Under the pieces are notes generated by a model. That model made no database searches. It worked only from the letters and a program-made list of their open reading frames with translations, and was not told the DNA's origin. This document shows, piece after piece, positions 19,353-41,084 of a DNA stretch of 64,000 nt (the first letter of the stretch is position 1; every line of letters begins with the position of its first letter). The position numbers were made by a program, and so were the translations under genes. Origin of the DNA: Schizochytrium sp. TIO01 (Eukaryota; Protista; Bigyra: Labyrinthulomycetes). Location: contig SMSO01000032.1 of assembly GCA_004764695.1 (NCBI GenBank), forward strand, positions 1,984,001 to 2,048,000. The letters are read 5' to 3'.

Positions 19353-20245
19353 AATCGAACCAGTCTGAGATGAAACTACGTACAAGTCGAAGCACTGCCG
19401 TTGAATCATGATCTTGAATCATGATCTTGAAATCAGCACATGTGGTTTTCTCAAGTAAAGGGATTGACATACATACATAACTTCTGTTATTCGCTGACTG
19501 CGCAGGTACCTAGCTAGCTAGGCACTAGAGCAAACAAACAAAGCAATCCTTGGTACAAGCGATAGAGGCTGTTAGCAGGAACTTTATGGTTTGCATCAGA
19601 TTGATTTATGGATGGGTGTTTCCAGTTCTTGTCGAAGCCAGTCCTGCCACACGCAAAGCAAGCTGTTTGCTTTTAGAGCTTTGTTTCGCAATTCATTCGC
19701 GCTGTCGACTCTCGCATTGGCAGGCAGTCTTGTTTTTGATGCTACTCTCTAGAGCTAGAAAACCAGACGTTAGCCAGGTAGATAGATACATACCATATCG
19801 TCACTAGAGGCTTCAACTGCCTTGCGAATAGTTCAACTGCTTGGTGAGGGAGTTGGCGAACGAATGACTCGAGTCGAAAAGCTCCTTAAGGAAGAGAACT
19901 AACTATCTAGCTACCGGGTACTGACTGCCGTGTGAGGAATTCATGTCCATGAATAGGAGAGAATGACGCTGACAAGGACTTGGACCCAGGCGTACTAAGC
20001 TTGTGGAGGCAGTGAGGAAAGCGGCGCTCAGAAAAGCGTTTGATCACCTCAAAGTTTGGCTCGTGAACAGTAGATTTGTCAGCGAGTCGGTTAGTGAGTC
20101 GGTTAATCTTTTATAGATGAGTCTGGCAGACCGAAAAAAGGAGACTGGTGAGCGTCACTTGTAGAACAGGCCGCTGTGTAGGGTTCGAGTGGCCAAACCT
20201 GCATTCGCTCTTGCATGCTGGCAGGGTGGGTATTGCTGTGACACC

Positions 20246-22507
20246 ATGACTAGGTTCCTTGCACTTGCTTTGTATGTCTTGGCCTTGTTAGTAGTTTTAA
20301 GTCTGGACACAGCACATGCTGCAAGTAGCGTTGGGAAAAACAAGACCCTAGCTCCTTTGGCGTATGAACCATTTAACTTGGGCCAAATCTTTGCAAAAGG
20401 TTGGATGCTTGCTCAACTTGAGGCGCAACACTATGGGCTCGTTGGCAACAAGTGGCTTGGCGGTGAGCAAGTGGGTGTAAAACACATTGATGCATCTGAC
20501 TGGCTCGGTTCAAAAGAACGATTCAATGGACTTTCCGAAGCATATCCGTATTGGGTAAACGGTGCTTGGCCTCTGGCAGTGCTCACAAATGACAAAACTC
20601 TTCAGGATGAAATAAAAAGTCACTTTGCATATATTTTTGACCAACAAGTAAAGAACGGAAAGCTTGGACCCAAATCCCAAACGAATCCATGGTGCACGTT
20701 TCGATTTCTCGTCGTTTTGACGCAATACATTGATGTTACCGGAGACCAGCAAGCTGTACGAAGCATGTTCGATTTTTCTTTTCAGCTGACTAAGTGGCTA
20801 AACGCAGCTCCACTTGATCAGCATCTATGGGCTTATGTGCGCTGGACGGAGATCCTCGAGGCCTACCAATGGCTACTCAACTCGAAATACGCAGATATGG
20901 GTTCAGATGCAGAAATATCTGCCATTGACGAGCTTTTTAAGCTGGCCAGAAGCACAGGCTTCGATTGGCCTACTTGGCTTGAAAGTGACGCCCAGCATCC
21001 GTTTACCAAAGACGTTGAGCACGGGTGGCTTCCCGACAATACTGAGGATGCAGATATCATGGGCTCGGACAAGCTAAAACCACACCTGGACCGCCAGTGG
21101 TCTCATGGTGTCAATGTCGCACAAGCGAGTATGATATGGGCATTGCTTTACAGAGAAACTGGAGATAGAACATACTTGACGCGTGGTCGCGCGGCTTGGG
21201 AGAAGTTGTACAAATTCCATGGCACCTCGTTGCATACATGGACTTCAGACGAAACCCTTTCTGGTCGCGGGCCGAACCGCGGTACAGAGACATGTGTTGT
21301 GGTTGAGATGATGCACTCTGCTGCACAAATGTTTCTACACTCTGGAGACCCATGGTATCTTGACCGAGCAGAGCGTATTGCTTACAATGGTCTTCCAGGT
21401 GCATTTTTTAATGGGACCATGTGGGCGCTGAACTATTACCAGCAAACGAACAAAATCGATGCCATGGATGGAGAGCCAAAATGCGAAAGGGGGGCTCAAT
21501 ACGGTTTTGGTATGGTTTTTGAATGCTGCGTTACAAATCATGGCCAAGGCTGGCCAAAGTTTGTCGCATCCCAGTGGGCTTTCAGCGGAAAATCCAATAC
21601 CTCAACTCTAGCACTATTGCAGTACTTTCCAAGTGAGATGAAAGGTCCCATAGTACTTCGAGATGGAACTAAGATCAAGACTATAGAAGTCAAGACCCAA
21701 TACCCTTTCAAAGAAAACATTCATATCAGGGTCCAGGAGGCATCCAAAAACTTTGATATGGAGGTCCGCGTGCCAGGATGGTGCAAGAACTGCACAGCTG
21801 AGATTGCAAATGAGACTCATTCATTAGAAGCTGGATCAATGTACTCCATACCTATACCTGCTGGAGATAGTGACATTACTCTTACATTTCCACTGCAAAT
21901 ACGCGTTGAGAGGCGCGAACCATATAAGGTGAGCCCTGAGCAAACTCTGAATGCACGATCAGTAAATGTTGTACGTGGTCCATTGGTCTTTGCTCTTCCG
22001 ATTAAATATGTCTTTGATCACGGAGCTTCTTGGGACACTTCAGCTGATCTGATGCCTATTGGCTTTCCCCATGCACAAAATAATTATCTACTCACTAATG
22101 GAACATGGCGCGTTGCTCTAGTTGAAGATATATCGGGCGACGCTTTAAAGTCTGTGCAGGTGCATTTACATGAGGATATAGATGATCTTTTCAGTAAGAT
22201 CCCGCTTGGTCAGGGGCCCTTTACAGAGATGTTTTCACCTATTCAACTGAGCATGAAAGCTGCGATCTTAAATATAGAAGATTGGCCCAACGTCGCAAAG
22301 GGTAAGCGAGGTAACGCAATAACTTGTTTACGCGGTAGCACGTCCTTACCCGAATACACTACAGGCTGGGCAGGTTTACCTCCTGTAAGCCCCGTGGATG
22401 CTCGCAATAAGCCACTTAAAACTATCGTGCTTATTCCGTATGGCGCTACGGATCTTCGCATATCTGAGTTTCCTACTGCTGCCAATACTAGAATGCAGAA
22501 TACTTAA
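20246..22507 (+). CDS. Secreted GH127-type (DUF1680, beta-L-arabinofuranosidase-like) cysteine glycosidase (~753 aa)
   Basis: ATG at 20246 gives signal peptide MTRFLALALYVLALLVVLSLDTAHA. Motifs PYWVNG, HGVNVAQA, GTETCVVVE, LDRAERIAYNGLPG, ECCVTNHGQGWPKF, TQYPF, RVPGWC, RGPLVFAL and C-terminal LIPYGATDLRISEFP. The ETC and CC Zn/nucleophile residues known from GH127 are present. Confidence 0.9.
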   Translation: MTRFLALALYVLALLVVLSLDTAHAASSVGKNKTLAPLAYEPFNLGQIFAKGWMLAQLEAQHYGLVGNKWLGGEQVGVKHIDASDWLGSKERFNGLSEAYPYWVNGAWPLAVLTNDKTLQDEIKSHFAYIFDQQVKNGKLGPKSQTNPWCTFRFLVVLTQYIDVTGDQQAVRSMFDFSFQLTKWLNAAPLDQHLWAYVRWTEILEAYQWLLNSKYADMGSDAEISAIDELFKLARSTGFDWPTWLESDAQHPFTKDVEHGWLPDNTEDADIMGSDKLKPHLDRQWSHGVNVAQASMIWALLYRETGDRTYLTRGRAAWEKLYKFHGTSLHTWTSDETLSGRGPNRGTETCVVVEMMHSAAQMFLHSGDPWYLDRAERIAYNGLPGAFFNGTMWALNYYQQTNKIDAMDGEPKCERGAQYGFGMVFECCVTNHGQGWPKFVASQWAFSGKSNTSTLALLQYFPSEMKGPIVLRDGTKIKTIEVKTQYPFKENIHIRVQEASKNFDMEVRVPGWCKNCTAEIANETHSLEAGSMYSIPIPAGDSDITLTFPLQIRVERREPYKVSPEQTLNARSVNVVRGPLVFALPIKYVFDHGASWDTSADLMPIGFPHAQNNYLLTNGTWRVALVEDISGDALKSVQVHLHEDIDDLFSKIPLGQGPFTEMFSPIQLSMKAAILNIEDWPNVAKGKRGNAITCLRGSTSLPEYTTGWAGLPPVSPVDARNKPLKTIVLIPYGATDLRISEFPTAANTRMQNT

Positions 22508-31916: not shown

Positions 31917-34688
31917 TCAACCTGAGAGCTGTTCAGCAGCTTGGAGAACTGCCTGAGCAGCTGTTGGGCGTGTGATCACTTTAGAGAATTCATCGTGCCC
32001 GAGGTTTTGATAGTCTTCGAACGATAGCTTCTTTCCTCCACATGTAATAGGGAGAACGCCACCAATCGTACCAATGGTATTGTTCAAAACACGCAAACGT
32101 TTGTAGTCACAATCAGAAAGATACGGAGAAGTTACCCTAATGTACGGGTTCGGTTGGATAAAACACGTCGAGTTGATCATGCTCAAATTTGCCCCGGGTT
32201 CATGTGCAAGGACGTAGCACTGGTTAACCCAAAGATAAAGTTCATTAACGTGTGTCATGTGGTTTCCACCATAATTTGCCTTCCAGCCTCGATTTCCATA
32301 TATGAGAACGTTTCTGTAGAAGTTATACTGGCTAGATCCGTCATCGGTATCAAAACCTTCTTGGTTGGCATAGGTACCCAATACTAAGTTATGATGAATA
32401 TTGCGCACTTTTGGTATAACTGTGGCACTATCTTCCGTCCCATGTATGTACGGCACTCGATCCCAGGAGTTAAAAGCCGCATGGTCTCCGCTCTCACGAA
32501 CTGCATTGAGCATTACGTTGTGATGGATATTATCACCGCCCAAGAAGCCATCGTTCATGTTAATCATTGACCGTGGGCCATTCATCATAACATTGTAGGA
32601 AATTTCTGCATCGCCACTAACTGCATGGAAGTAGGCGCATGATTGTTTTTGAAAAACGCCTAGCTCACGGAAGAGGTTACGAGTAATGACAGTACCCCGA
32701 GGTTGGTTGCCTGAACGGCCATCTGGGCCGAGTGGCCATGGCAACTGTCGAGTACAGTTCTCGTTCAAACAATGCCCAGTGTAACCCCAGCTTACTATTG
32801 CTGAATATCCAATCCATGCAAATTCGCAGTGCTCAATTCGAGCTCCACGGTTACGCCCAGTCATTAAAACTCCATTTCCATCTATTCGTTCTAGCTTTGA
32901 GTGAAGTAAGGTAAAGTTGTTGGTATTCTGAATGATGATTGCAGCAGATCTAGGAAGCGCCCAATCTCCACCAGATGGCATTTCGTGGGGATCAAGCCAC
33001 ACATGTGCTGTATCCCGGAGCTCAATATTGCGGATCATGACGTTGTCTGTGTTAGAAACATTAAAGAGTACTTTGGTTCGAGTTGCACGGAATACCCTTT
33101 GAACAGGCCCATCCTTTCCGTGACCTAAGATCTCACTGTTTTCTGTAGAGTTGAATACGTAGTACAATTTGCGTGAGGCATCATCGTAGTACCATTCGTT
33201 CTCTTCGTCAAGCTCTGCAAGTACATTTTCAATATACCACTGAGCAGCAGCATTTTCACCTTCACCTCCTTGACTACCACCAAGAGATGGATCAAAAGTA
33301 CAGGTTTTTGTTGTGTAATTCCAACTTTGTACTTGCCAAGTCCAGGTGTACCATCTACCGTTACCTCTCCACCCTACTACAACTCCACGGTTTTGGATTT
33401 GTTCATCATCATAGCTACTTGAGTGCGGGAGCACAGTATCATCCCAGGTAAGTCCAGAAGGGCTTTTGTGAGGTGTGATTTGTCGAGGTGGTCTGCCAGC
33501 ACACCAATAGCCAAATGATGGTGAGAGGTTCTCACACGAGCCACCCATACCCATATGATATTCTCCCCAATCCCCTTCACCGGTCCATCTGGCCCCTGGA
33601 CCATTCTGCATCGGCCAGTTCACAGAGGGCCAATCTTCAGCTGTAACAACGATATCTGTAGGTGGGCCCGAGCGTGGCGTAACTGCTTTGTGCCACACCG
33701 TCTTATTTTCGATCCAACCTTTGATATAAATACCGTCACCCATGACAGGGTCGACGCTTACAAATGTTTCTCCAGATAGTTCTGGGTCGCCGTTCGGGTA
33801 TCGTGCACGTACCGCTCTACGATTATCTACGCGAAGGCCATCAAAAGAGGCTGCATGGGAGTCTGAAAGAGTAGTAACCCACACATTGTTTCGCACATGT
33901 TCCCAAGAAGAAGGATTCAAGTTCAGATCTTCGGCTCCCGTTACAACAGCATTTTCCCCATCTACACTTTCTATGACAAGACCCGATAAATGGCGGCCTT
34001 GAATTGATAACGTTTGCGAAACAAAGTGTGGACAATTTCCGCGAAGCTTGATAGTTGAGAAAGGCTCCGAGATTGCTCTTACAGCTCTGGCAATAGTGCG
34101 GAAAGCACTCTGTATTGTTGCTCCATCGTTTGTATCACTCCCATTCTCTGCATCTACATAAAATGTACTCGACGATGTCTCAGTTGGCTTTCTGATGTTT
34201 GCATTTGCAGATGCAGATGATTGAGAGGGTGGAAGCCTCCAGTCTAGGTGATCTTGAAAATTTGGGCGATCCAAGCCGCACTTCTGCAACTGTAAAGCAT
34301 CGAAAAGTAATGGGAAATCACCGTACGATGAAAGAACTGTTTTGCCTGTTTCATAAGTAAATTGGCGAAACGCGCAATCGGTCTCAACTGAAACACCTGG
34401 AGGCGATCCAGAAGGTCCGTCACCTGGGCTGTATGGAGAGGCCAGAGCGCCTAAGGCTGGGCCATCTTTACCAAGGAGTCCCAGCTCGCGTGAGGAAATT
34501 GCCCAAAGCCCTAGCGTAAGATTCACAACAAGGGTAGCAAGGCACAATACTCGACGTCGGCGCCAGAGGTAAGAGTGACTCTGTCGAAAGTGAGACTCAA
34601 GCTTGTCTTCGGGTTGCAGACCGTCATACTCGGGTTTTGTAGTGCTTTCTTGAAGTAGTAGAGGCTGTCCAAGCCCGGACTCCAACAT
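31917..34688 (-). CDS. Type II membrane-anchored right-handed beta-helix (pectin-lyase-like fold, GH141-like) protein (923 aa)
   Basis: RRRR followed by a hydrophobic anchor. FYVDAENGSDTNDGATIQSAFRTIARA starter motif, RARYPN, WYIENVLAELDEENEWYYD, and parallel beta-helix repeats (ITRNLFRELG, ISYNVMMNGPR, IHHNVMLN, DTDDGSS). Confidence 0.75.
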   Translation of the reverse strand: MLESGLGQPLLLQESTTKPEYDGLQPEDKLESHFRQSHSYLWRRRRVLCLATLVVNLTLGLWAISSRELGLLGKDGPALGALASPYSPGDGPSGSPPGVSVETDCAFRQFTYETGKTVLSSYGDFPLLFDALQLQKCGLDRPNFQDHLDWRLPPSQSSASANANIRKPTETSSSTFYVDAENGSDTNDGATIQSAFRTIARAVRAISEPFSTIKLRGNCPHFVSQTLSIQGRHLSGLVIESVDGENAVVTGAEDLNLNPSSWEHVRNNVWVTTLSDSHAASFDGLRVDNRRAVRARYPNGDPELSGETFVSVDPVMGDGIYIKGWIENKTVWHKAVTPRSGPPTDIVVTAEDWPSVNWPMQNGPGARWTGEGDWGEYHMGMGGSCENLSPSFGYWCAGRPPRQITPHKSPSGLTWDDTVLPHSSSYDDEQIQNRGVVVGWRGNGRWYTWTWQVQSWNYTTKTCTFDPSLGGSQGGEGENAAAQWYIENVLAELDEENEWYYDDASRKLYYVFNSTENSEILGHGKDGPVQRVFRATRTKVLFNVSNTDNVMIRNIELRDTAHVWLDPHEMPSGGDWALPRSAAIIIQNTNNFTLLHSKLERIDGNGVLMTGRNRGARIEHCEFAWIGYSAIVSWGYTGHCLNENCTRQLPWPLGPDGRSGNQPRGTVITRNLFRELGVFQKQSCAYFHAVSGDAEISYNVMMNGPRSMINMNDGFLGGDNIHHNVMLNAVRESGDHAAFNSWDRVPYIHGTEDSATVIPKVRNIHHNLVLGTYANQEGFDTDDGSSQYNFYRNVLIYGNRGWKANYGGNHMTHVNELYLWVNQCYVLAHEPGANLSMINSTCFIQPNPYIRVTSPYLSDCDYKRLRVLNNTIGTIGGVLPITCGGKKLSFEDYQNLGHDEFSKVITRPTAAQAVLQAAEQLSG

Positions 34689-36907
34689 TGCATAAAGCCT
34701 GTTTGGCCTATCTAAAGTAACACGTCCCCGTGCCTAGTTGAGGTGTTTGCTAGAGGAGCACTCAACCCAGCCCAGTGCAGCTAGCTGTTGTGGCAAGGCG
34801 ATATTCTCTACCTGCCAGTTCAAGTTCTGATGCGTTTAGATATAGAAGCTTACTTACTACAAACCGCCTTCGAGCTTCCACCTCCTTGTCAATCAAAAAC
34901 GCCATTAAAAGAGAAAGCGACTAAGCACCTGCGTGGTAATGCTAGCAGGACTGGCAAATAATATCTAACCTAACTTATTATTGGAGTCCTAGTCTCATTC
35001 ATGTTTCACTCATTTCTGGCTGTTCTGAAACAAATGCATGAGCAACTTTATTTTGGCCTACTGTGCTTTAGATTTTAATGAAACTTAAGACACGAAGTTG
35101 CAATACTGCTGCTGGAAATATCTTTTGGCTATTAAAAAAACCAAAAAAAACATCTGCTATCATATATATATTTAATACATTTGATATCGCTATTTAAAGT
35201 TAAATTATATTTTAATTGAAAAAAATTAAAAAATTATTATTATTAAAATAAATAAAATAAAATAAAAGTAGGTATCTTCCTGTTACTTGCTTGACGGAAA
35301 GAAGCGCAGGGAGACTATCTTGTAATTCGAATGAACCTCTATTTGCTTGATTTTCAATATGACTAATCGACACGCCTAGTCGCGCTCTAATCCGAACTCG
35401 AGCTTCGTGACCACTGCTGAGATATGTATGGGCAATCAGCACTCATGATCAGGCTACTCATAGCAGCTCTTTAATCTGGTTAATAACCCAAGCCAGCACA
35501 TGCTTCTATGTTAAAGATAGTTCGTTGCTTGCATTATAGTGAGAGAATCGCGTTTTTGCTTGAGCTTTTGTCAGTGCAGGAAAATTGTTTAAGGATCGCA
35601 CGACAGCCCGCGAACGAAACGGGATAAGACAGAGAACGTATACTCTATTGAAATTGAAATTACGCTCCTTTCACTGCAAGAAGACTGCGAAGCTTTAGGT
35701 GAAACCCTCGTTTTGGGTTTACATAGGCTTAGTGGTGGTGCTGCTATTGATCTGCGAAGAACCCTCACTTCCCCAAACCAGATTCCAAAGCATCTCAATT
35801 TGGTTAACGTTGAATAAAAGAAGAGCGCGGATGAACCATTGACCCCTGGCTCCAGAAAAGAATTTGGTCATGCGTACATATTCCGATGTGCGCAGCACGA
35901 CTCCAAGTCTCAAAGAACGCAGACTAGTAAGCTGCAATTCATACGGTAGATCGTGCCTCAATGTATTGTTTAAAACTTCTCTACGATCATTATGGTATAT
36001 TTATGATTTACCTTCGCACATAAGAATTGAATTACAGATCATACTACTTAACACGGCCATTTCTACTCTCAGGTGCCGGTCTCAGTGCAACAAACAATTA
36101 ATAAATCAACTTTCGCACCTATTTACCCGTGCCAGTCGGGGTATTATATGGAACATCATCGGGACATCTGTCGGAATTTATTTAATATATATCGCTTACG
36201 TTGAACTCAGACTCATCAACATTTTCGGCATGCTCGCAATACAAGAAAATGATTATTAATTGGCCATTTAAACAATATATCACACTTTAACTCTTCCCTA
36301 TGTAAGAAATCTAAATATGAATAAGCTGGAGAAGACGATTCTCTCTGTGAGTCAAATGAATAGAGCTAATGCTCCTGAAGCGGACGCCACGTCCGGATAT
36401 GAGGTTGTAGCATTTCGTCAAACTTGATCTGCAAGAGTATGGACTTGAAAGTGTTCTAATTAGGGCATCTTTTTTTAGAACTAGAGAAATTCAGATGATT
36501 GTGCTCATTAAAATATTACCGGCATGAATTTACAGTGTGTGTTTATTATTTAACGTCGGTTAGAACTCTCGAGGCAAAAGTTTTACCTCAACATAGTTTC
36601 TTCTTTTCTTTCTTTATCTCAAAAAAAATTGAAACAAAAACGGTGATGTACATACCCCAAGCAAATCTCACTTTCAGTAGTTGATGCTACTCTTGCCGGC
36701 CATTTTATTTGGGTAAGGAAAATCAAGATGGGAGCAGATTTGTTATGAATTTAAATTTTTGATGCTGGCGTCGGTGTGATATAAAGGAGTTGAAAGAGGT
36801 CGCATATACAATCAAATAACTTGGATCATATTTTGCTGCCACGGAAGGTCAAAATTGACTGCGTTTAGCACCAAATGAACGAATAGAGAACTACATCTCT
36901 CACTTCT

Positions 36908-39301
36908 CTAATACAATTGATAACGCATGTTTCGTGCAACACTCAAAGGCGGCTTGTTAAATTTTTCTTTACCCCAATGCGTATCACTTTCGGTTGCCAT
37001 GAAGAACACATGTCCATTTTCTGCATGTATAGTAACAGGAAAGATAGTGATCTGTTGGTTCGCCTCGCGAAAATCGGGCTTTAATCGAAGTTCAATGACG
37101 CGCAATGATTTTGTATCTTCTGTTGCATCAGATTTTAGAGCTTCATGCATGTCAAATACCCATAAATAAGGAATCTGACCTTCAATTCCATTCCAGCGAG
37201 TTACATGACCGATTCCCCATACAAATCTGCCTAAGACAATATGGCCTGATGTACCACCACGAAGAAACTGATTTGAGGAAGCGCTAAGGATAGCAGGAGA
37301 ACATGATACTCGAGGGTGGATGCCAGAAGATGCAGGTGTGGGTGATGGCTTTGAGAAAGAGATTAGCAGGTCTTCATCCAATTTAAGCACTGTAAGTGGA
37401 GTCGATGAGTGAATGAAATACAATTCCTCATTAAAGCTGAAAAAGCCATAATTCTTACCGTTGCCAGCATTTACAACAGGAAATGGTAGATCCGGAATAT
37501 CGATGACAACAGCTTTATTTGTTGCCAAGTTCATCAGCCAAGGTTCCCACCGACCAGTGGTTATGTTCTTACCATGTGTATACAAAATAGGCTGACCCTT
37601 ATACTCAAAAAGTCTAGGGTCAAGTGGGGCGTTAAAGAGCTGACAGGGTTCACCGACTGGGCGCATATGGGAGTCATACAATTGGCGTATGTGCGCTGTT
37701 CTGGCGATGGTGGTAATACGCCGGTAGACAGACACATACTTTACATCAGGTTGATCTGCGATCTCGATAGGAAGCATGGTAGGGTTCGTGTTGAACGCCT
37801 TTACAGTTTGCGGATCTTTATACTGGATCTGTTCAATTGGCTCATAATATAAAGTAGCAGAAGCTTCCTCGTCCATGCGAAAAGGAGGTTTGACAACAGC
37901 AGCTAGGAGAATATCAACTAACCATTGAGGAGTTGTAAGGCGGGGAACCGTTAAATTATCACCTAGCGGCGCACACTCCTCTTCATACCAACTGTTGTCA
38001 CCTGAGCCATGCAGAATAGGTTCCAAAGCGCTAACAATGGTGTCATGTGCATGAATATTCGCAGGAAGAGGAGGGTAAGGATCGTATATAGCGGGCATTA
38101 AAGGGTCACGTGTTGCTGTAGGTGCTTCAGTTGAAGAAGGTGGCAAGGTAGGGGCTTGAGTAGGGGCCTGAGTGACTTGTTCTAAAGAGTTCCTTTGAAA
38201 AAGCGCAAGGCCAGCCAGCCCTGCAGTGATCACAATTGCTAGTATGGCTCTCGTCCACCGACGTTTCTTTGCCTTTTCCGCATCGGATGTAAGCATTGGG
38301 GATGGTTTATAGAAGTAAGCAGCTACAAGGCACACGAAGAGTGCTCCAATACCTCCAGGGCTTGCATGCTTATCCCAGACCAAAACATTAACTAATACCG
38401 TACACGCCTTGCTTGCGTTGCCAACAACAGTGAAACTAGTTGCTGAAAGGGCCTTTCTTGTCCAGAACGCGAAGAATGAAATGCCGGTACCAAGAACCCA
38501 ACTCAACGGGACCCACATGGTATTTACAGTAAACACGTTGTCCATTGCTTGCATAAAACCAGAAACCTCTCCGGTAAAAGCACCAATAACCACGAGAAAT
38601 GGAAGAGGAATTAGGTTGGTATAGTATACACGACCCCACGTGGTCATTTCTACGGTGTTGACAACGTGTTTAATGTAGATTTGATCAAAGCAAAATAACG
38701 TAAACCATACAACAACCCAGAACATACTATCGTATGTAAGTTGACTTTGCTCCGCTTGCATGTATGATAAGGCACCTAGAAGTAGAACTATCAAGATGAA
38801 CACGGATTGCTTGGTCGGAAGGTCACGCCCAAGATAGTGAGTTTCAAGGACACTCAACACTAGCGGGGTACTGGCACGGAACACTATGAAGGTTTCAACA
38901 TTTGCGTGCTGTAAGATTTTAATATTAGCAAAAATGGTGCCTAGAAAACTGACAGGAACAATCCAGAAAGCTTTGACCTTGGCCCATTCTAGCGCATCAA
39001 CATCGATGAAGTTGCACATACCCAACGCCCATGTGAAGGCTGCAGCAGCGAAAAGTTGAGAAAACAGGAGAATGCTGGGGTGTGGAAAATAGTTTACCGC
39101 AAGTTTGTTCACAACCAAAAGCAATGCAGACGTGAGCATGTAGCCTGATACGGCAATCCATGCAGACTTCGGCGTTGTGTCATCGTTATCTGCTGGGGCT
39201 TTAGCCGGAGCTTTTTCGATATCACCATCCTCGTTTTTGTTCATCATTAAGCCGGCATTTTCGTCATCAGAGTTTTCTGCTGAGACCCTTTGTTTGGTCA
39301 T
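36908..39301 (-). CDS. GDP-sugar transporter-like (GONST/Vrg4/SLC35-type) domain fused to a lumenal GT91/GH130-like beta-propeller domain (~797 aa)
   Basis: First ATG at 39301. NST motifs LLVVNKLAV, LQHANVETFIVFRASTPL, WGRVYYTNL, LSATSFTVVGNASK and VLVWDKHAS. Then KKRRW plus an extra TM helix, a TQAP/TEAP stalk, and LDPRLF, GKNYGFF..ELYFIHS and LRGGTSG. Confidence 0.85.
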   Translation of the reverse strand: MTKQRVSAENSDDENAGLMMNKNEDGDIEKAPAKAPADNDDTTPKSAWIAVSGYMLTSALLLVVNKLAVNYFPHPSILLFSQLFAAAAFTWALGMCNFIDVDALEWAKVKAFWIVPVSFLGTIFANIKILQHANVETFIVFRASTPLVLSVLETHYLGRDLPTKQSVFILIVLLLGALSYMQAEQSQLTYDSMFWVVVWFTLFCFDQIYIKHVVNTVEMTTWGRVYYTNLIPLPFLVVIGAFTGEVSGFMQAMDNVFTVNTMWVPLSWVLGTGISFFAFWTRKALSATSFTVVGNASKACTVLVNVLVWDKHASPGGIGALFVCLVAAYFYKPSPMLTSDAEKAKKRRWTRAILAIVITAGLAGLALFQRNSLEQVTQAPTQAPTLPPSSTEAPTATRDPLMPAIYDPYPPLPANIHAHDTIVSALEPILHGSGDNSWYEEECAPLGDNLTVPRLTTPQWLVDILLAAVVKPPFRMDEEASATLYYEPIEQIQYKDPQTVKAFNTNPTMLPIEIADQPDVKYVSVYRRITTIARTAHIRQLYDSHMRPVGEPCQLFNAPLDPRLFEYKGQPILYTHGKNITTGRWEPWLMNLATNKAVVIDIPDLPFPVVNAGNGKNYGFFSFNEELYFIHSSTPLTVLKLDEDLLISFSKPSPTPASSGIHPRVSCSPAILSASSNQFLRGGTSGHIVLGRFVWGIGHVTRWNGIEGQIPYLWVFDMHEALKSDATEDTKSLRVIELRLKPDFREANQQITIFPVTIHAENGHVFFMATESDTHWGKEKFNKPPLSVARNMRYQLY

Positions 39302-41084
39302 GTTCAATTCGCGCGAGCCTGTCAGTAGAAGGGTCGCGAAGGCGAACGAGCTCAGCCTTTAGGCTTTGATTGTTCCCTTCTGGGCTTCTGACCGGACAAC
39401 TTGAGCCACAAGAAGGTATTCCAGATTTGCTGCGTAGCGATAGTACCACTTCGGAACAGCTCAGAATTATTTTTAAAATACCTTCATTCATAATGACGCA
39501 CGCACAAGTGTATCCTTACTTCATCCCACGTTTCAAATTTTATAAATACCTTTTGAGTACTTTCTTTTTTTGTTAGATTCAATATTCAGGAAAAAGAAAA
39601 AGTAAAAGTAAAAGTAAAAGAGAAGCAAATGAAAAATAATATATATATTGAAGGTCAGAGAAACCATGGTAACAAGGAATGAAGATTTCAGAATTATGCC
39701 CCCCTGAGGGCGAATACACTTTGCTCACCAAAACCAAAAACTCAGGAATATACATACACACCACATCAGCAGTCTTTAAAAACCTCACTACTAAAAGGTT
39801 TACCAAAGTCTGGTTCCAGGCCCAAATTGAACCTACAAGCAACAACCAAAGACGTTGGCGATGACGACTTGGACTTTTATGCAGTACAAGACATCCTTAA
39901 ACTCATTACAGCTGGCACGCTTGGCCTCCTGAGCAAAAAGACACTTCAAATACTTACTAGTGGGGGTTCTTCAAATAGAATTTCGAAACGCAATGGAGGC
40001 CACTGGTAGCCTGCTGGAGTCAAAGGTTTCGATTTCGTGCTTTAAAGAGCAAGCTCGTGCCAAACTAAGGGTCGAGAGAAGAGGCAGCATCTATTATCTA
40101 CTCAAGACTCTACTCATACGTAAATATTTTCTTTCAAGCGGATTTCAAGAATTCCATTCACCTGTAGATTCCAGAGTATAGTACAGCAAGACAACATGAA
40201 TCGAGCAATCGGCAGGTGCACAACTTTGAGATACACTAATGCAAGCGCTGATAATCTGTAACAAAACTTAGGTGATTTCGCAGAGTAAGCTCCCTCGATC
40301 TCCGAGTCCAAGAAACAAATTCTAATCAAACATTAGCAAACTAACGCACAACTTTTGTTTCCTTTTCTCCCAATTAGGATTTTCATTGAAAAGAATAAAA
40401 ATCGTTGCCTTGACCACTGAACAAATCAATAACATTAGTATACGGCTACAAACGCATAACCAGACTTATGATAAAATTGCGAGACCTAGGTTGGCGTCAC
40501 AGTAGAATGAAGATAGTGATGAAACTCCTCTACACCACTTCGGTTTTATAGCAGTGCATGTAATTCTTGTAGACAAAATTAATCAGACAACCAAATAAGA
40601 AGACTAATCAGCACTTTTCAGAGCAGAGACTCGTAATTTGGCAGCTAAAATACTCATACATAACTAACAGTGATGCATAATCATAGTGTCGCGCGCTCCG
40701 TCAGGCCTCTCTCCTCCTGCACTCAAGTGTTTTAAAATATTTTTTTCTTCCTTTTTTTTTTACAACCATCTTTATAAAGAGGGTATGTCCGAATGGCATG
40801 CATAAATAATAATTCGGTAATAAATTTACTAGTTTTTATTTTTTAGAGTGAGAAAAGGGAGAAAAAAGGAACTAACAATAAATCACCTTCAAAGCCTCAT
40901 TGGAGTCGAGCGGCGGGTTTGATTAGCAAATAATATACAGTAGTGATGGTAACAACATAGAGTAAACCTTCACGATCAGCCATATTAAGACTATCTAGAA
41001 TGTATTCGGATCTAGAATAACCTTCCAACTCTACAATATCTGAGTCTTTACTAATACAAAGTCTTAACCCAGCAATAATAAAAA

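Follow-up and report, generated by a model that had tools for sequence, protein, structure and literature searches.

The window, a 64,000-nucleotide stretch of DNA from Schizochytrium sp. TIO01, was found to carry at 36908..39307 one open frame on the minus strand. The ATG nearest its 5' end lies at 39301 and opens a coding sequence of 797 aa plus stop without an intron (36908..39301), and an open frame of 797 codons in DNA of about 45% GC is far beyond chance. Contigs assembled from public runs delimit a transcript unit on the same strand (36730..39416), in which the ATG at 39301 is the first, the leader of about 115 nt holding no other. One contig equal to the gene was obtained from each of four runs belonging to four studies (X1, 36730-39410; X5, 36732-39415; X14, 36757-39415; X7, 36159-39416), each containing the whole open frame unspliced and with zero joints, and read depth was 31-206 over the gene against 0-4 in the flanks. 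These runs carry the guessed label 'RNA?', and none is formally recorded as RNA. The first-pass annotation, made from the sequence, had proposed that one polypeptide unites two domains and had named a splice or a transcript end between them as counter-evidence; the contigs of the four runs cross both domains without a joint, and no such break was seen in them.

Variants found among these contigs were synonymous only in the transporter and propeller portions, and amino-acid polymorphisms were restricted to the stalk that joins them (T395A/I and T397A). An in-frame insertion of 12 nt behind 38147, present in three of the four runs, creates a third TQAP unit. As contigs equal to the gene recur across four runs and four studies, and as variants leave the protein sequence of both folded domains unchanged and preserve the reading frame through the stalk, a real and single gene is present. 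It is one intronless gene, expressed in runs that are provisionally labelled RNA, and encodes an 11-helix membrane protein.

The polypeptide begins with an acidic tail (residues 1-43; 39173..39301, minus strand) that is disordered (pLDDT <50) and, by analogy with the topology of Vrg4, probably cytosolic. A nucleotide-sugar transporter core of ten helices follows (residues 44-332; 38306..39172, minus strand), as indicated by alignment to solved structures, by homologues and by AlphaFold2. Residues 46-332 aligned with residues 22-320 of 9s35, a solved GDP-mannose transporter (E 1.1e-10), and residues 46-336 with residues 20-327 of Vrg4 (5oge; E 3.5e-5), while AlphaFold2 placed ten core transmembrane helices within residues 44-330 at pLDDT 80-97 and an additional short helix at 245-256. 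The complete transporter of about ten helices proposed earlier is thus confirmed, residues 46-336 being a Vrg4-like GDP-sugar transporter. Stand-alone homologues number 330, the nearest at 51-56% identity (E 1e-100), and several bear the names GDP-fucose or GDP-mannose transporter. The window protein falls short of the Pfam cut-offs of EamA (PF00892, 16.4 bits versus 28.2) and TPT (PF03151, 8.3 bits versus 30), whereas the homologues at 51-56% identity have both.

FYNN and GALNK are taken here, after the Vrg4 literature, to be the motifs of GDP-mannose recognition. At these positions the alignment reads YYTN and GNASK in the window protein, and the same variants run throughout the consensus of the homologous transporter clade; since the nucleotide motifs differ from those of Vrg4, the donor is uncertain. 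Residues 44-332 are predicted to exchange GDP-sugar for GMP, as antiporters of the Vrg4/GONST type do. The same genome retains a separate ten-helix paralogue (55% identity), which suggests that the transporter described here provides a dedicated supply. Seven stand-alone transporter relatives have an 11th helix without any enzyme, and the transporter falls within a small clade whose members have 11 helices.

The eleventh transmembrane helix, detected by hydropathy and by AlphaFold2, spans residues 340-377 (38171..38284, minus strand) and would put the remaining chain in the lumen. Its hydrophobic core (residues 349-369; 38195-38257) has a Kyte-Doolittle value of 2.0, the maximum of the protein, and is preceded by a basic patch, KAKKRR (residues 343-348; 38258..38275, minus strand), which by the positive-inside rule would lie on the cytosolic side. 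Patch and helix were located where the first-pass annotation had placed them, and the 11 transmembrane segments with a lumenal C-terminus that it expected agree with the ten plus one helices found by hydropathy and AlphaFold2, the basic patch preceding the eleventh; a cytosolic prediction of the C-terminal domain, which would have spoken against it, was not obtained. Two distant relatives discussed below, P0005 and P0007, likewise have an 11th helix. Because no segment is more hydrophobic than helix 11, which the basic patch precedes, and because stand-alone propeller relatives are type II-like, the C-terminal domain is predicted at the sequence level to be lumenal, with helix 11 serving as a type II-like anchor; the compartment would be the lumen of the Golgi (or ER).

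A Thr/Pro-rich stalk (residues 378-440; 37982..38170, minus strand) connects this helix to the C-terminal part. It has a pLDDT of about 30, with AlphaFold2 disorder at residues 379-440, and is introduced by TQAP repeats (residues 377-384; 38150-38173, minus strand), the first residue of which overlaps the end of helix 11. The stretch TQAPTQAPTLPPSSTEAPTAT quoted for the stalk in the earlier annotation was indeed present at residues 377-397. As the stalk is long and disordered, a tether is likelier than a rigid channel; a complex prediction of residues 40-372 with residues 470-797 scored 0.00 and gave no verdict, neither for nor against docking. Between stalk and propeller lies a lumenal segment (residues 441-483; 37853..37981, minus strand) with a family-conserved C...TPxWL helix, seen in alignment A1 and as the AlphaFold2 helix 459-470.

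The last part of the chain (residues 484-797; 36911..37852, minus strand) is all-beta in AlphaFold2, and its domain model (pTM 0.77) is a five-bladed beta-propeller. All six top VIA matches, 9erh, 4udg, 3taw, 9fj8, 2b4w and 5ayc, are GH130/GT108 structures (Z 17.8-18.6), and the best Foldseek match is the GH130 structure 5a7v; in VIA the fold also resembles GH43 and GH62 hydrolases (Z 15-17.5). The family profile aligned to P0018 (hhalign 98.2%) and to P0019 (97.2%), the latter alignment spanning the (E)DPR, GKNW and RGGT motifs. P0019, a remote relative and the only one to pass the PF04041 cut-off (37.3 bits against 26 bits), is a Pfam-validated GH130 member. An Atlas feature search returned pointers to GH130 and BMT clusters. 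The earlier claims of a soluble domain of about 380 aa with a GT91/GH130 fold and of the motif order EDPR, KNW, RGGT therefore hold, the former through the five-bladed propeller and its solved matches and the latter through the profile aligned across all three motifs to a validated GH130 member.

No Pfam family is matched by the C-terminal domain, PF04041 being absent at E up to 10 (cut-off 26 bits), and PF12141 (Bmt, cut-off 28.3 bits) has no match in the window protein. Weak PF12141 matches of 18-20 bits, below the cut-off, occur in the KNW-LYFxHS region of P0010 (E 1e-3) and P0018 (E 3e-4). A PF04041 profile search of the genome itself gave zero matches at E up to 1; a PF12141 search of this genome was equally blank, which is uninformative because the model is silent in every control genome too. 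With the Pfam thresholds for strict GT91 or GH130 membership not reached, the domain should be called no more than 'GT91/GH130-fold, beta-mannosyltransferase-like', and the propeller is best read as a new family within the GH130/GT108/GT91 superfamily.

Conserved residues occur in four short motifs. LDPR (residues 560-563; 37613..37624, minus strand), which begins the sequence LDPRLF, aligned with the EDPR of P0019 and contains the invariant R563 and D561, the candidate catalytic Asp; D or E occupies the latter position in 11 of 11 family members. The residue before D561 is Leu, where Glu is usual in beta-1,2/1,3 GH130 enzymes, and the proton donor of GH130 is preceded by an E/Y residue (PMC7660257). 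GKNY (residues 615-618; 37448..37459, minus strand) includes the invariant K616, 55 residues after D561, and from this spacing K616 may correspond to the Lys/Arg that GH130 and GT108 have at the +1 site. RGGT (residues 681-684; 37250..37261, minus strand) starts with the invariant R681 (37259-37261), a candidate phosphate ligand, and GIGH (residues 696-699; 37205..37216, minus strand) ends with the nearly invariant H699; the two conserved residues are putative counterparts of the phosphate-binding R168/H231 of GH130. Sequence searches of solved structures with the C-terminal domain, with profiles A1 and A2, and with P0018 and P0019 recovered nothing related and no GH130 chain, so that D561, K616 and R681 are mapped onto catalytic residues of GH130/GT108 by the order of the motifs and the distances between them. 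Conserved basic residues number six (R527, R563, K616, R681, H699 and R790) and conserved acidic ones only two (D543 and D561), a basic-rich and acid-poor pattern that fits a phosphate-bearing donor. The window protein retains every family-invariant residue, and DPRLF, KNY and LRGGT lie at the positions first reported for them.

Only ten relatives turned up when 1.84 billion representatives were searched exhaustively, and a profile search added P0018 and P0019 alone. A word-indexed homologue search for the domain, made with the complete protein, recovered only the protein itself, and no related locus was detected in metagenome contigs searched with the window domain or in viral contigs searched with P0018. 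A link to giant viruses was considered and set aside, its support being confined to fold and feature similarity, and gene transfer is not claimed. Two of the ten relatives, P0007 and P0005, are transporter fusions with a transporter identity of about 38-40%, and P0005 carries an added GT2 domain; the recurrence of the fusion in homologues that the first-pass annotation had called for is thus seen in two distant proteins. Four others (P0002, P0003, P0004 and P0008) are stand-alone propellers with a single N-terminal anchor, the type II membrane build that is usual for Golgi glycosyltransferases. As the propeller tree is star-like, it does not separate one ancient fusion from two independent ones. 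The fusion was not found as a common annotated architecture in the databases and papers searched, nor was any natural transporter-glycosyltransferase fusion found in the literature searched, and the covalent architecture is apparently undescribed.

It is proposed, with a probability of roughly 55%, that the gene encodes a dedicated importer of GDP-sugar to which an inverting glycosyltransferase from a new family is tethered; compartment, donor, acceptor, transferase chemistry and any kinetic channelling are inferences. The transporter half would import a GDP-sugar, with GDP-mannose as the leading candidate and GDP-L-galactose or GDP-fucose as alternatives; helix 11, preceded by KAKKRR, would lead the chain into the lumen of the Golgi or ER, where the Thr/Pro stalk of about 60 residues would hold the propeller enzyme. 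At the lumenal face, the tethered propeller would transfer the imported sugar with inversion and without a metal ion, as a glycosyltransferase in which D561 may act as catalytic acid/base while R563, K616, R681 and H699 may hold the sugar and the diphosphate. By keeping the enzyme at the highest donor concentration, the tether would reserve a private supply for one glycan, which may belong to a wall, a scale or an exopolysaccharide. The union of a GDP-sugar importer with a beta-mannosyltransferase-like domain in one polypeptide, as first suggested, is supported at the levels of architecture, fold and superfamily.

Biosynthesis is likelier than degradation given the recurrent fusion to an importer (P0007 and P0005, with GT2 in the latter), the six conserved basic versus two acidic residues, the known needs of GH130 hydrolases, which lack phosphate ligands and require a second carboxylate (PMC7660257), and the use of GDP-Man by GH130 and GT108 enzymes (PMC12814180; PMC10913872). 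A wider generalisation, somewhat short of even odds, is that single-chain import-and-transfer machines exist as a type: the clade of 11-helix GDP-sugar transporters would have served repeatedly as a platform for lumenal glycan-building domains, a lone propeller in the window protein and in P0007, and GT2 together with a propeller in P0005. The propeller would then define a new family of eukaryotic Golgi glycosyltransferases with the GH130/GT108/GT91 fold.

An unlikely alternative is a lumenal propeller with no transferase role, either an enzyme like those of GH130 (beta-mannosidase or phosphorylase) or a module that binds glycans without catalysis. It may trim glycans or sense them, or it may regulate the transporter or determine where it resides. 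GH130 does include secreted beta-1,2-mannosidases bearing signal peptides (PMC7660257), the fold extends to GH43 and GH62 hydrolases as noted, no Pfam glycosyltransferase model reaches threshold, and phosphate from GDP hydrolysis is present in the Golgi lumen (PMC5714488). Hydrolysis is however disfavoured by the conservation of only two acidic positions, since downstream of D561 no second carboxylate is conserved that could serve as hydrolytic base, and the basic residues that are conserved point to a ligand with phosphate; all the family-invariant residues would hardly be kept in a dead, lectin-like domain. Moreover, the domain has been joined to a donor importer three times, once also to GT2, and its stand-alone relatives are built like type II Golgi glycosyltransferases, both of which favour the tethered transferase.

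It is quite improbable that the halves are functionally unmatched, the transporter being a polytopic anchor or sorting device or carrying a nucleotide sugar other than the one used by the propeller. The substrate motifs unlike those of Vrg4 and the enzyme-free extra helix of the seven stand-alone 11-helix relatives would suit such a view, but the core is as conserved as free-standing transporters (51-56% identity, synonymous-only variation), one helix would suffice for anchoring and eleven are superfluous, and P0005 and P0007 keep the pairing despite their divergence in the transporter (~38-40% identity). Barely credible is an artefact, in which an assembly error joined two neighbour genes or a read-through frame never made one protein. 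Its sole support is that the gene is known at the nucleotide level, from runs not formally recorded as RNA; against it, the frame runs uninterrupted through assemblies made independently from four studies, whose contigs end at the gene borders, the linker shows in-frame repeat polymorphism, and two distant sequences from other samples share the architecture. The importer tethered to a transferase is thus retained as the preferred reading.

Compared with Golgi GDP-sugar transporters of the Vrg4/GONST type (SLC35, DMT superfamily; 5oge, 9s35), the window protein has a ten-helix core that can be aligned end to end, to which it adds the 11th helix and a lumenal extension of 420 residues; it differs from Vrg4 also in its nucleotide motifs YYTN and GNASK and in Pfam TPT and EamA scores below cut-off. 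Its propeller shares the five-bladed fold with the GH130 beta-mannoside phosphorylases, including Uhgb_MS (9erh; Z 18.6, rmsd 3.3 over 246 residues; PMC12814180), and the order (E)DPR ... KNW ... RGGT with a Pfam GH130 member. Uhgb_MS is a dual phosphorylase/GDP-Man transferase with metal-independent, inverting chemistry (PMC12814180). The GH130 phosphorylases are soluble, cytoplasmic and bacterial, whereas the window domain is membrane-tethered, eukaryotic and predicted to be lumenal, carries Leu where Glu/Tyr precedes the Asp in GH130, and falls short of the cut-off for PF04041.

A second comparison is with GT108, the fold match being 2b4w (Z 18.0 in VIA), which we take to be the Leishmania mannogen mannosyltransferase/phosphorylase (MTP). 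GT108 enzymes are true GDP-Man transferases, and in the ancestral enzyme the catalytic Asp D86 and Lys K136 stand 50 residues apart (PMC10913872), against 55 for D561 and K616, which from this spacing may be equivalent. No sequence-level match to GT108 was obtained, and those enzymes are cytosolic, single-domain and engaged in mannogen metabolism, whereas the window domain is tethered behind an 11-helix transporter. With GT91 (Bmt), for which no solved structure is available for comparison (PMC8476585), the stand-alone propeller relatives have in common the build of type II Golgi membrane proteins; PF12141 matches stay below 28.3 bits in P0010 and P0018 and are absent from the window protein. 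The gene adds a eukaryotic, membrane-tethered branch to the GH130/GT108/GT91 propeller superfamily and is a candidate for the pathway, poorly known so far, by which labyrinthulomycete protists make wall material in the Golgi. To our knowledge, this superfamily contains the sole glycosyltransferases built on a glycoside-hydrolase-type propeller, and GT91 is fungal and never fused to a transporter.

How lumenal glycosyltransferases are supplied with donor is an open question in Golgi biology, and a natural covalent fusion makes the value of transporter-transferase coupling directly testable. The fusion is conserved in three very divergent proteins, with a free transporter paralogue in the same genome, and, if the proposal is true, it would be genetic (Rosetta-stone) proof that such coupling is selectively useful. 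The closest concept is that of the assemblies SLC35A2-UGT8, SLC35A2/A3-MGATs and SLC35A2-B4GALT1, detected by FRET, PLA or NanoBiT (PMC9368800, PMC6453868), in which a nucleotide-sugar importer also adjoins the enzyme that consumes the sugar. Those partners are separate polypeptides, whereas the link in the window protein is covalent and genetically fixed, so that it looks like a natural covalent version of a transporter-glycosyltransferase pairing otherwise known only as loose complexes.

The fusion is encoded on the minus strand by one single open frame (36908..39307 in the ORF listing), whose first ATG, at 39301, gives a product of 797 aa. In the translated ORF, the elements read by the first-pass annotation were all found at their assigned places on the minus strand: the KAKKRR basic patch (residues 343-348), the core of a hydrophobic helix (residues 349-369; the most hydrophobic 19-mer of the protein, Kyte-Doolittle 2.0), the stalk TQAPTQAPTLPPSSTEAPTAT (residues 377-397), LDPRLF (starting at residue 560), GKNY (residues 615-618) and LRGGT (residues 680-684). 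Two large neighbouring ORFs, 20189-22507 (plus strand) and 31917-34688 (minus strand), gave glycoside-hydrolase-like matches, to the catalytic and middle domains of GH127 (E 2e-10) and, weakly, to a GH141 insertion domain (E 5e-5).

A sequencing-run search disclosed 20 runs from 9 studies containing >90% of the words of the stretch, and four runs from four studies were mapped onto window positions 35300-40900. In each, the gene is covered at full length by one contig without joints (X1, 36730-39410; X5, 36732-39415; X14, 36757-39415; X7, 36159-39416), at a depth of 31-206 over the gene versus 0-4 over its flanks. As the run assemblies sum to only 20-48 Mb for a 64-Mb genome and the contigs end at the gene borders, the runs were read as RNA, the type label itself being a guess. 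This indicates a single transcript that is neither spliced nor ended between the two domains; no further ATG was present in its leader of about 115 nt. The X7 contig runs about 570 nt beyond the usual 3' end (36159-36730), with insertions of 1 nt at 36620 and 9 nt at 36651, an extension that may represent a longer 3' UTR, read-through or variation between strains.

Four synonymous differences separate the runs from the window, one in the transporter core (L147), one in the stalk (L401) and two in the propeller (L646 and P652), and amino acid changes are confined to the stalk (T395A/I and T397A). The stalk also varies in its TQAP units (38147-38173, minus strand, residues 377-385), of which the window has two and three of the four runs have three, owing to a 12-nt in-frame insertion behind 38147. 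With only synonymous changes in the folded halves and in-frame ones limited to the stalk, the linker appears free to vary while the frame between the halves is kept.

The N-terminal half was confirmed as a nucleotide-sugar transporter, since residues 46-336 can be aligned throughout with two GDP-mannose transporters of known structure, 9s35 (E 1.1e-10) and Vrg4 (5oge, E 3.5e-5). An AlphaFold2 full-length model, built on a 43-sequence alignment, agrees with the expected ten helices plus an eleventh after KAKKRR: it has ten core helices (pLDDT 80-97) and a short extra one at 245-256, then a long eleventh helix (340-377), a disordered segment (379-440, pLDDT about 30) and a beta domain. Residues 1-380 retrieved 330 proteins, the best at 51-56% identity (E 1e-100). 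All matches listed are 251-426 aa, short enough for stand-alone transporters, and come from stramenopiles, chlorarachniophytes, green algae and a chytrid, with the thraustochytrid Hondaea among the best named ones. Compared with Vrg4, the alignment shows YYTN for FYNN and GNASK for GALNK, variants common to the whole homologous clade, some members of which carry source names as GDP-fucose or GDP-mannose transporter. By homology the substrate would be one of the GDP-sugars.

The C-terminal part, residues 381-797, matched no Pfam family, even with the E limit raised to 10, and no sequence of a solved structure. An exhaustive phmmer search through 1.84 billion representatives yielded no more than ten relatives (E 1.4e-13 to 7.5e-4), all from metagenome or run assemblies. 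Their alignment defines the motifs GxDPRxF, GKNWxPF, LYFxHSxxP, RGGTxG, GIGHxT, QxPxLWxFD, FPxS, TATESxxW and RN, and every family-invariant residue is present in the window protein. AlphaFold2 folded the family alignment into an all-beta domain (pTM 0.77), for which VIA, an alignment-free structure search of 48,161 chains, returned six GH130/GT108 structures at the top: 9erh (Uhgb_MS, Z 18.6), 4udg (18.3), 3taw (18.3), 9fj8 (18.2), the Leishmania protein 2b4w (18.0) and 5ayc (17.8). The best Foldseek match is also GH130 (5a7v, E 2e-6). In the VIA ranking, hydrolases with other five-bladed propellers (GH62 and GH43 among them) and a deacetylase come next, at Z 17.5 or below, a lead so small that the modelled fold alone would not settle the family. 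The decision comes from a sequence bridge: a profile search with the family reached P0018 and P0019, the latter a Pfam-validated GH130 member (37.3 bits against a cut-off of 26), and hhalign joined the family profile to P0019 (97.2%, E 3.5e-11) across DPR, KNW and RGGT, and to P0018 (98.2%, E 3.6e-14) across DPR and KNW. P0010 and P0018 have below-threshold matches to the fungal beta-mannosyltransferase family PF12141, and GH130 and BMT clusters are among the nearest to the propeller in a protein-language-model Atlas (0.89-0.91). We conclude that the domain, first taken for a GT91/GH130-type propeller, is a new, very small family within the GH130/GT108/GT91 superfamily.

Among BFVD models, the best fold matches of the propeller were uncharacterised multi-domain giant-virus proteins (E 1e-9 to 1e-7, better than those of solved GH130 structures): those of Pithovirus LCPAC103 and EsV-1-17, and one from Indivirus that carries a LicD/FKTN domain. 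The Atlas likewise ranks Nucleocytoviricota clusters first, and a search of viral contigs with P0018 gave no sequence-level link.

In GH130 enzymes the proton-donor Asp is preceded by Glu (beta-1,2/1,3) or Tyr (beta-1,4), a +1-site Lys/Arg follows 46-57 residues later, and phosphate is bound by an Arg/His pair that is absent from the hydrolases, which carry a second carboxylate (PMC7660257). The ancestral GT108 enzyme has D86, K136, R153, H212 and D289 (PMC10913872), and GDP-Man is accepted by GH130 beta-1,2 and GT108 enzymes (PMC12814180). In the new family, R563, K616 (D+55) and R681 are invariant, H699 is nearly so, and position 561 is D or E throughout, which makes D561, K616 and R681 the candidate active site, although Leu rather than Glu or Tyr precedes the Asp in the window protein. 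With six basic and only two acidic conserved positions, a phosphate-bearing donor would fit better than hydrolysis, pointing to a putative transferase. Two GC-rich relatives, P0006 and P0009, have Glu at the candidate catalytic position (TEPR), and in place of a transporter or anchor their propeller has attached regions of 300-400 aa without a family assignment.

The search for further fusions recovered P0007 (683 aa), with the same ten-helix transporter, extra helix and propeller, and P0005 (1146 aa), in which the transporter and extra helix are followed by a GT2 domain (PF00535, E 9e-15), a region of about 400 aa without a Pfam match and, last, the propeller. P0005 resembles B4GALNT1 weakly and in its GT2 part only; the unmatched region contains HIPKTGG, a motif that resembles the PAPS-binding loop of Golgi sulfotransferases. 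P0005 might be a complete assembly line for a glycan within a single polypeptide. The transporter halves of both are only about 38-42% identical to that of the window protein. P0002, P0003, P0004 and P0008 are stand-alone propellers with a single anchor at the N-terminus, built like classical type II Golgi glycosyltransferases.

The extra helix is likewise present in seven of the nearest stand-alone transporters (P0022-25, P0032, P0040 and P0133), which carry it behind a basic HKRLK patch and terminate within about ten residues of it, three of them (P0022, P0032 and P0040) with a conserved DDF/DDL end. To our knowledge, 11-helix members of this nucleotide-sugar transporter family have not been described. 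In a tree of 123 transporters these seven and the three fusions split from all 113 ten-helix proteins (SH-aLRT 94), and this one-sided branch suggests that the extra helix probably arose once and served as a platform for lumenal add-ons, directing the C-terminus into what would be the Golgi lumen. Within the branch, the window protein is sister to six stand-alone transporters (support 95) and P0005 and P0007 join P0133 (support 99), a finer topology made uncertain by long branches. The propeller tree matches it: P0005 and P0007 cluster with P0002, a stand-alone protein (95/95), away from the window protein, a pattern that either one old fusion or two separate ones would give.

The genome keeps a separate ten-helix paralogue of 55% identity (C33:4712196-4713056, a 328-aa open frame), so the fused copy is additional and presumably a dedicated importer, which might channel its substrate to the propeller. 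Three more distant transporter paralogues (L004-L006) also occur there.

With its intron-poor genes and a GC content of about 45%, the genome fits a thraustochytrid. Thraustochytrid walls consist of scales that are produced in the Golgi from a sulfated polysaccharide with a high content of galactose and xylose (PMC11642839). A literature search for transporter-glycosyltransferase fusions returned only non-covalent transporter-transferase complexes, and the Atlas holds no large cluster like the full-length fusion, the best being stand-alone transporters (0.79). Darley et al. are said to have identified the wall galactose in 1973 as L-galactose, the donor of which is a GDP-sugar. Golgi-made, galactose-rich walls and a GDP-sugar donor together make it an attractive hypothesis that the fusion may help to synthesise wall material or exopolysaccharide. 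The fusion is real, rare and, within the searches made, undescribed; it combines two known kinds of protein, a transporter and a propeller glycosyltransferase, and in that sense is not categorically new.
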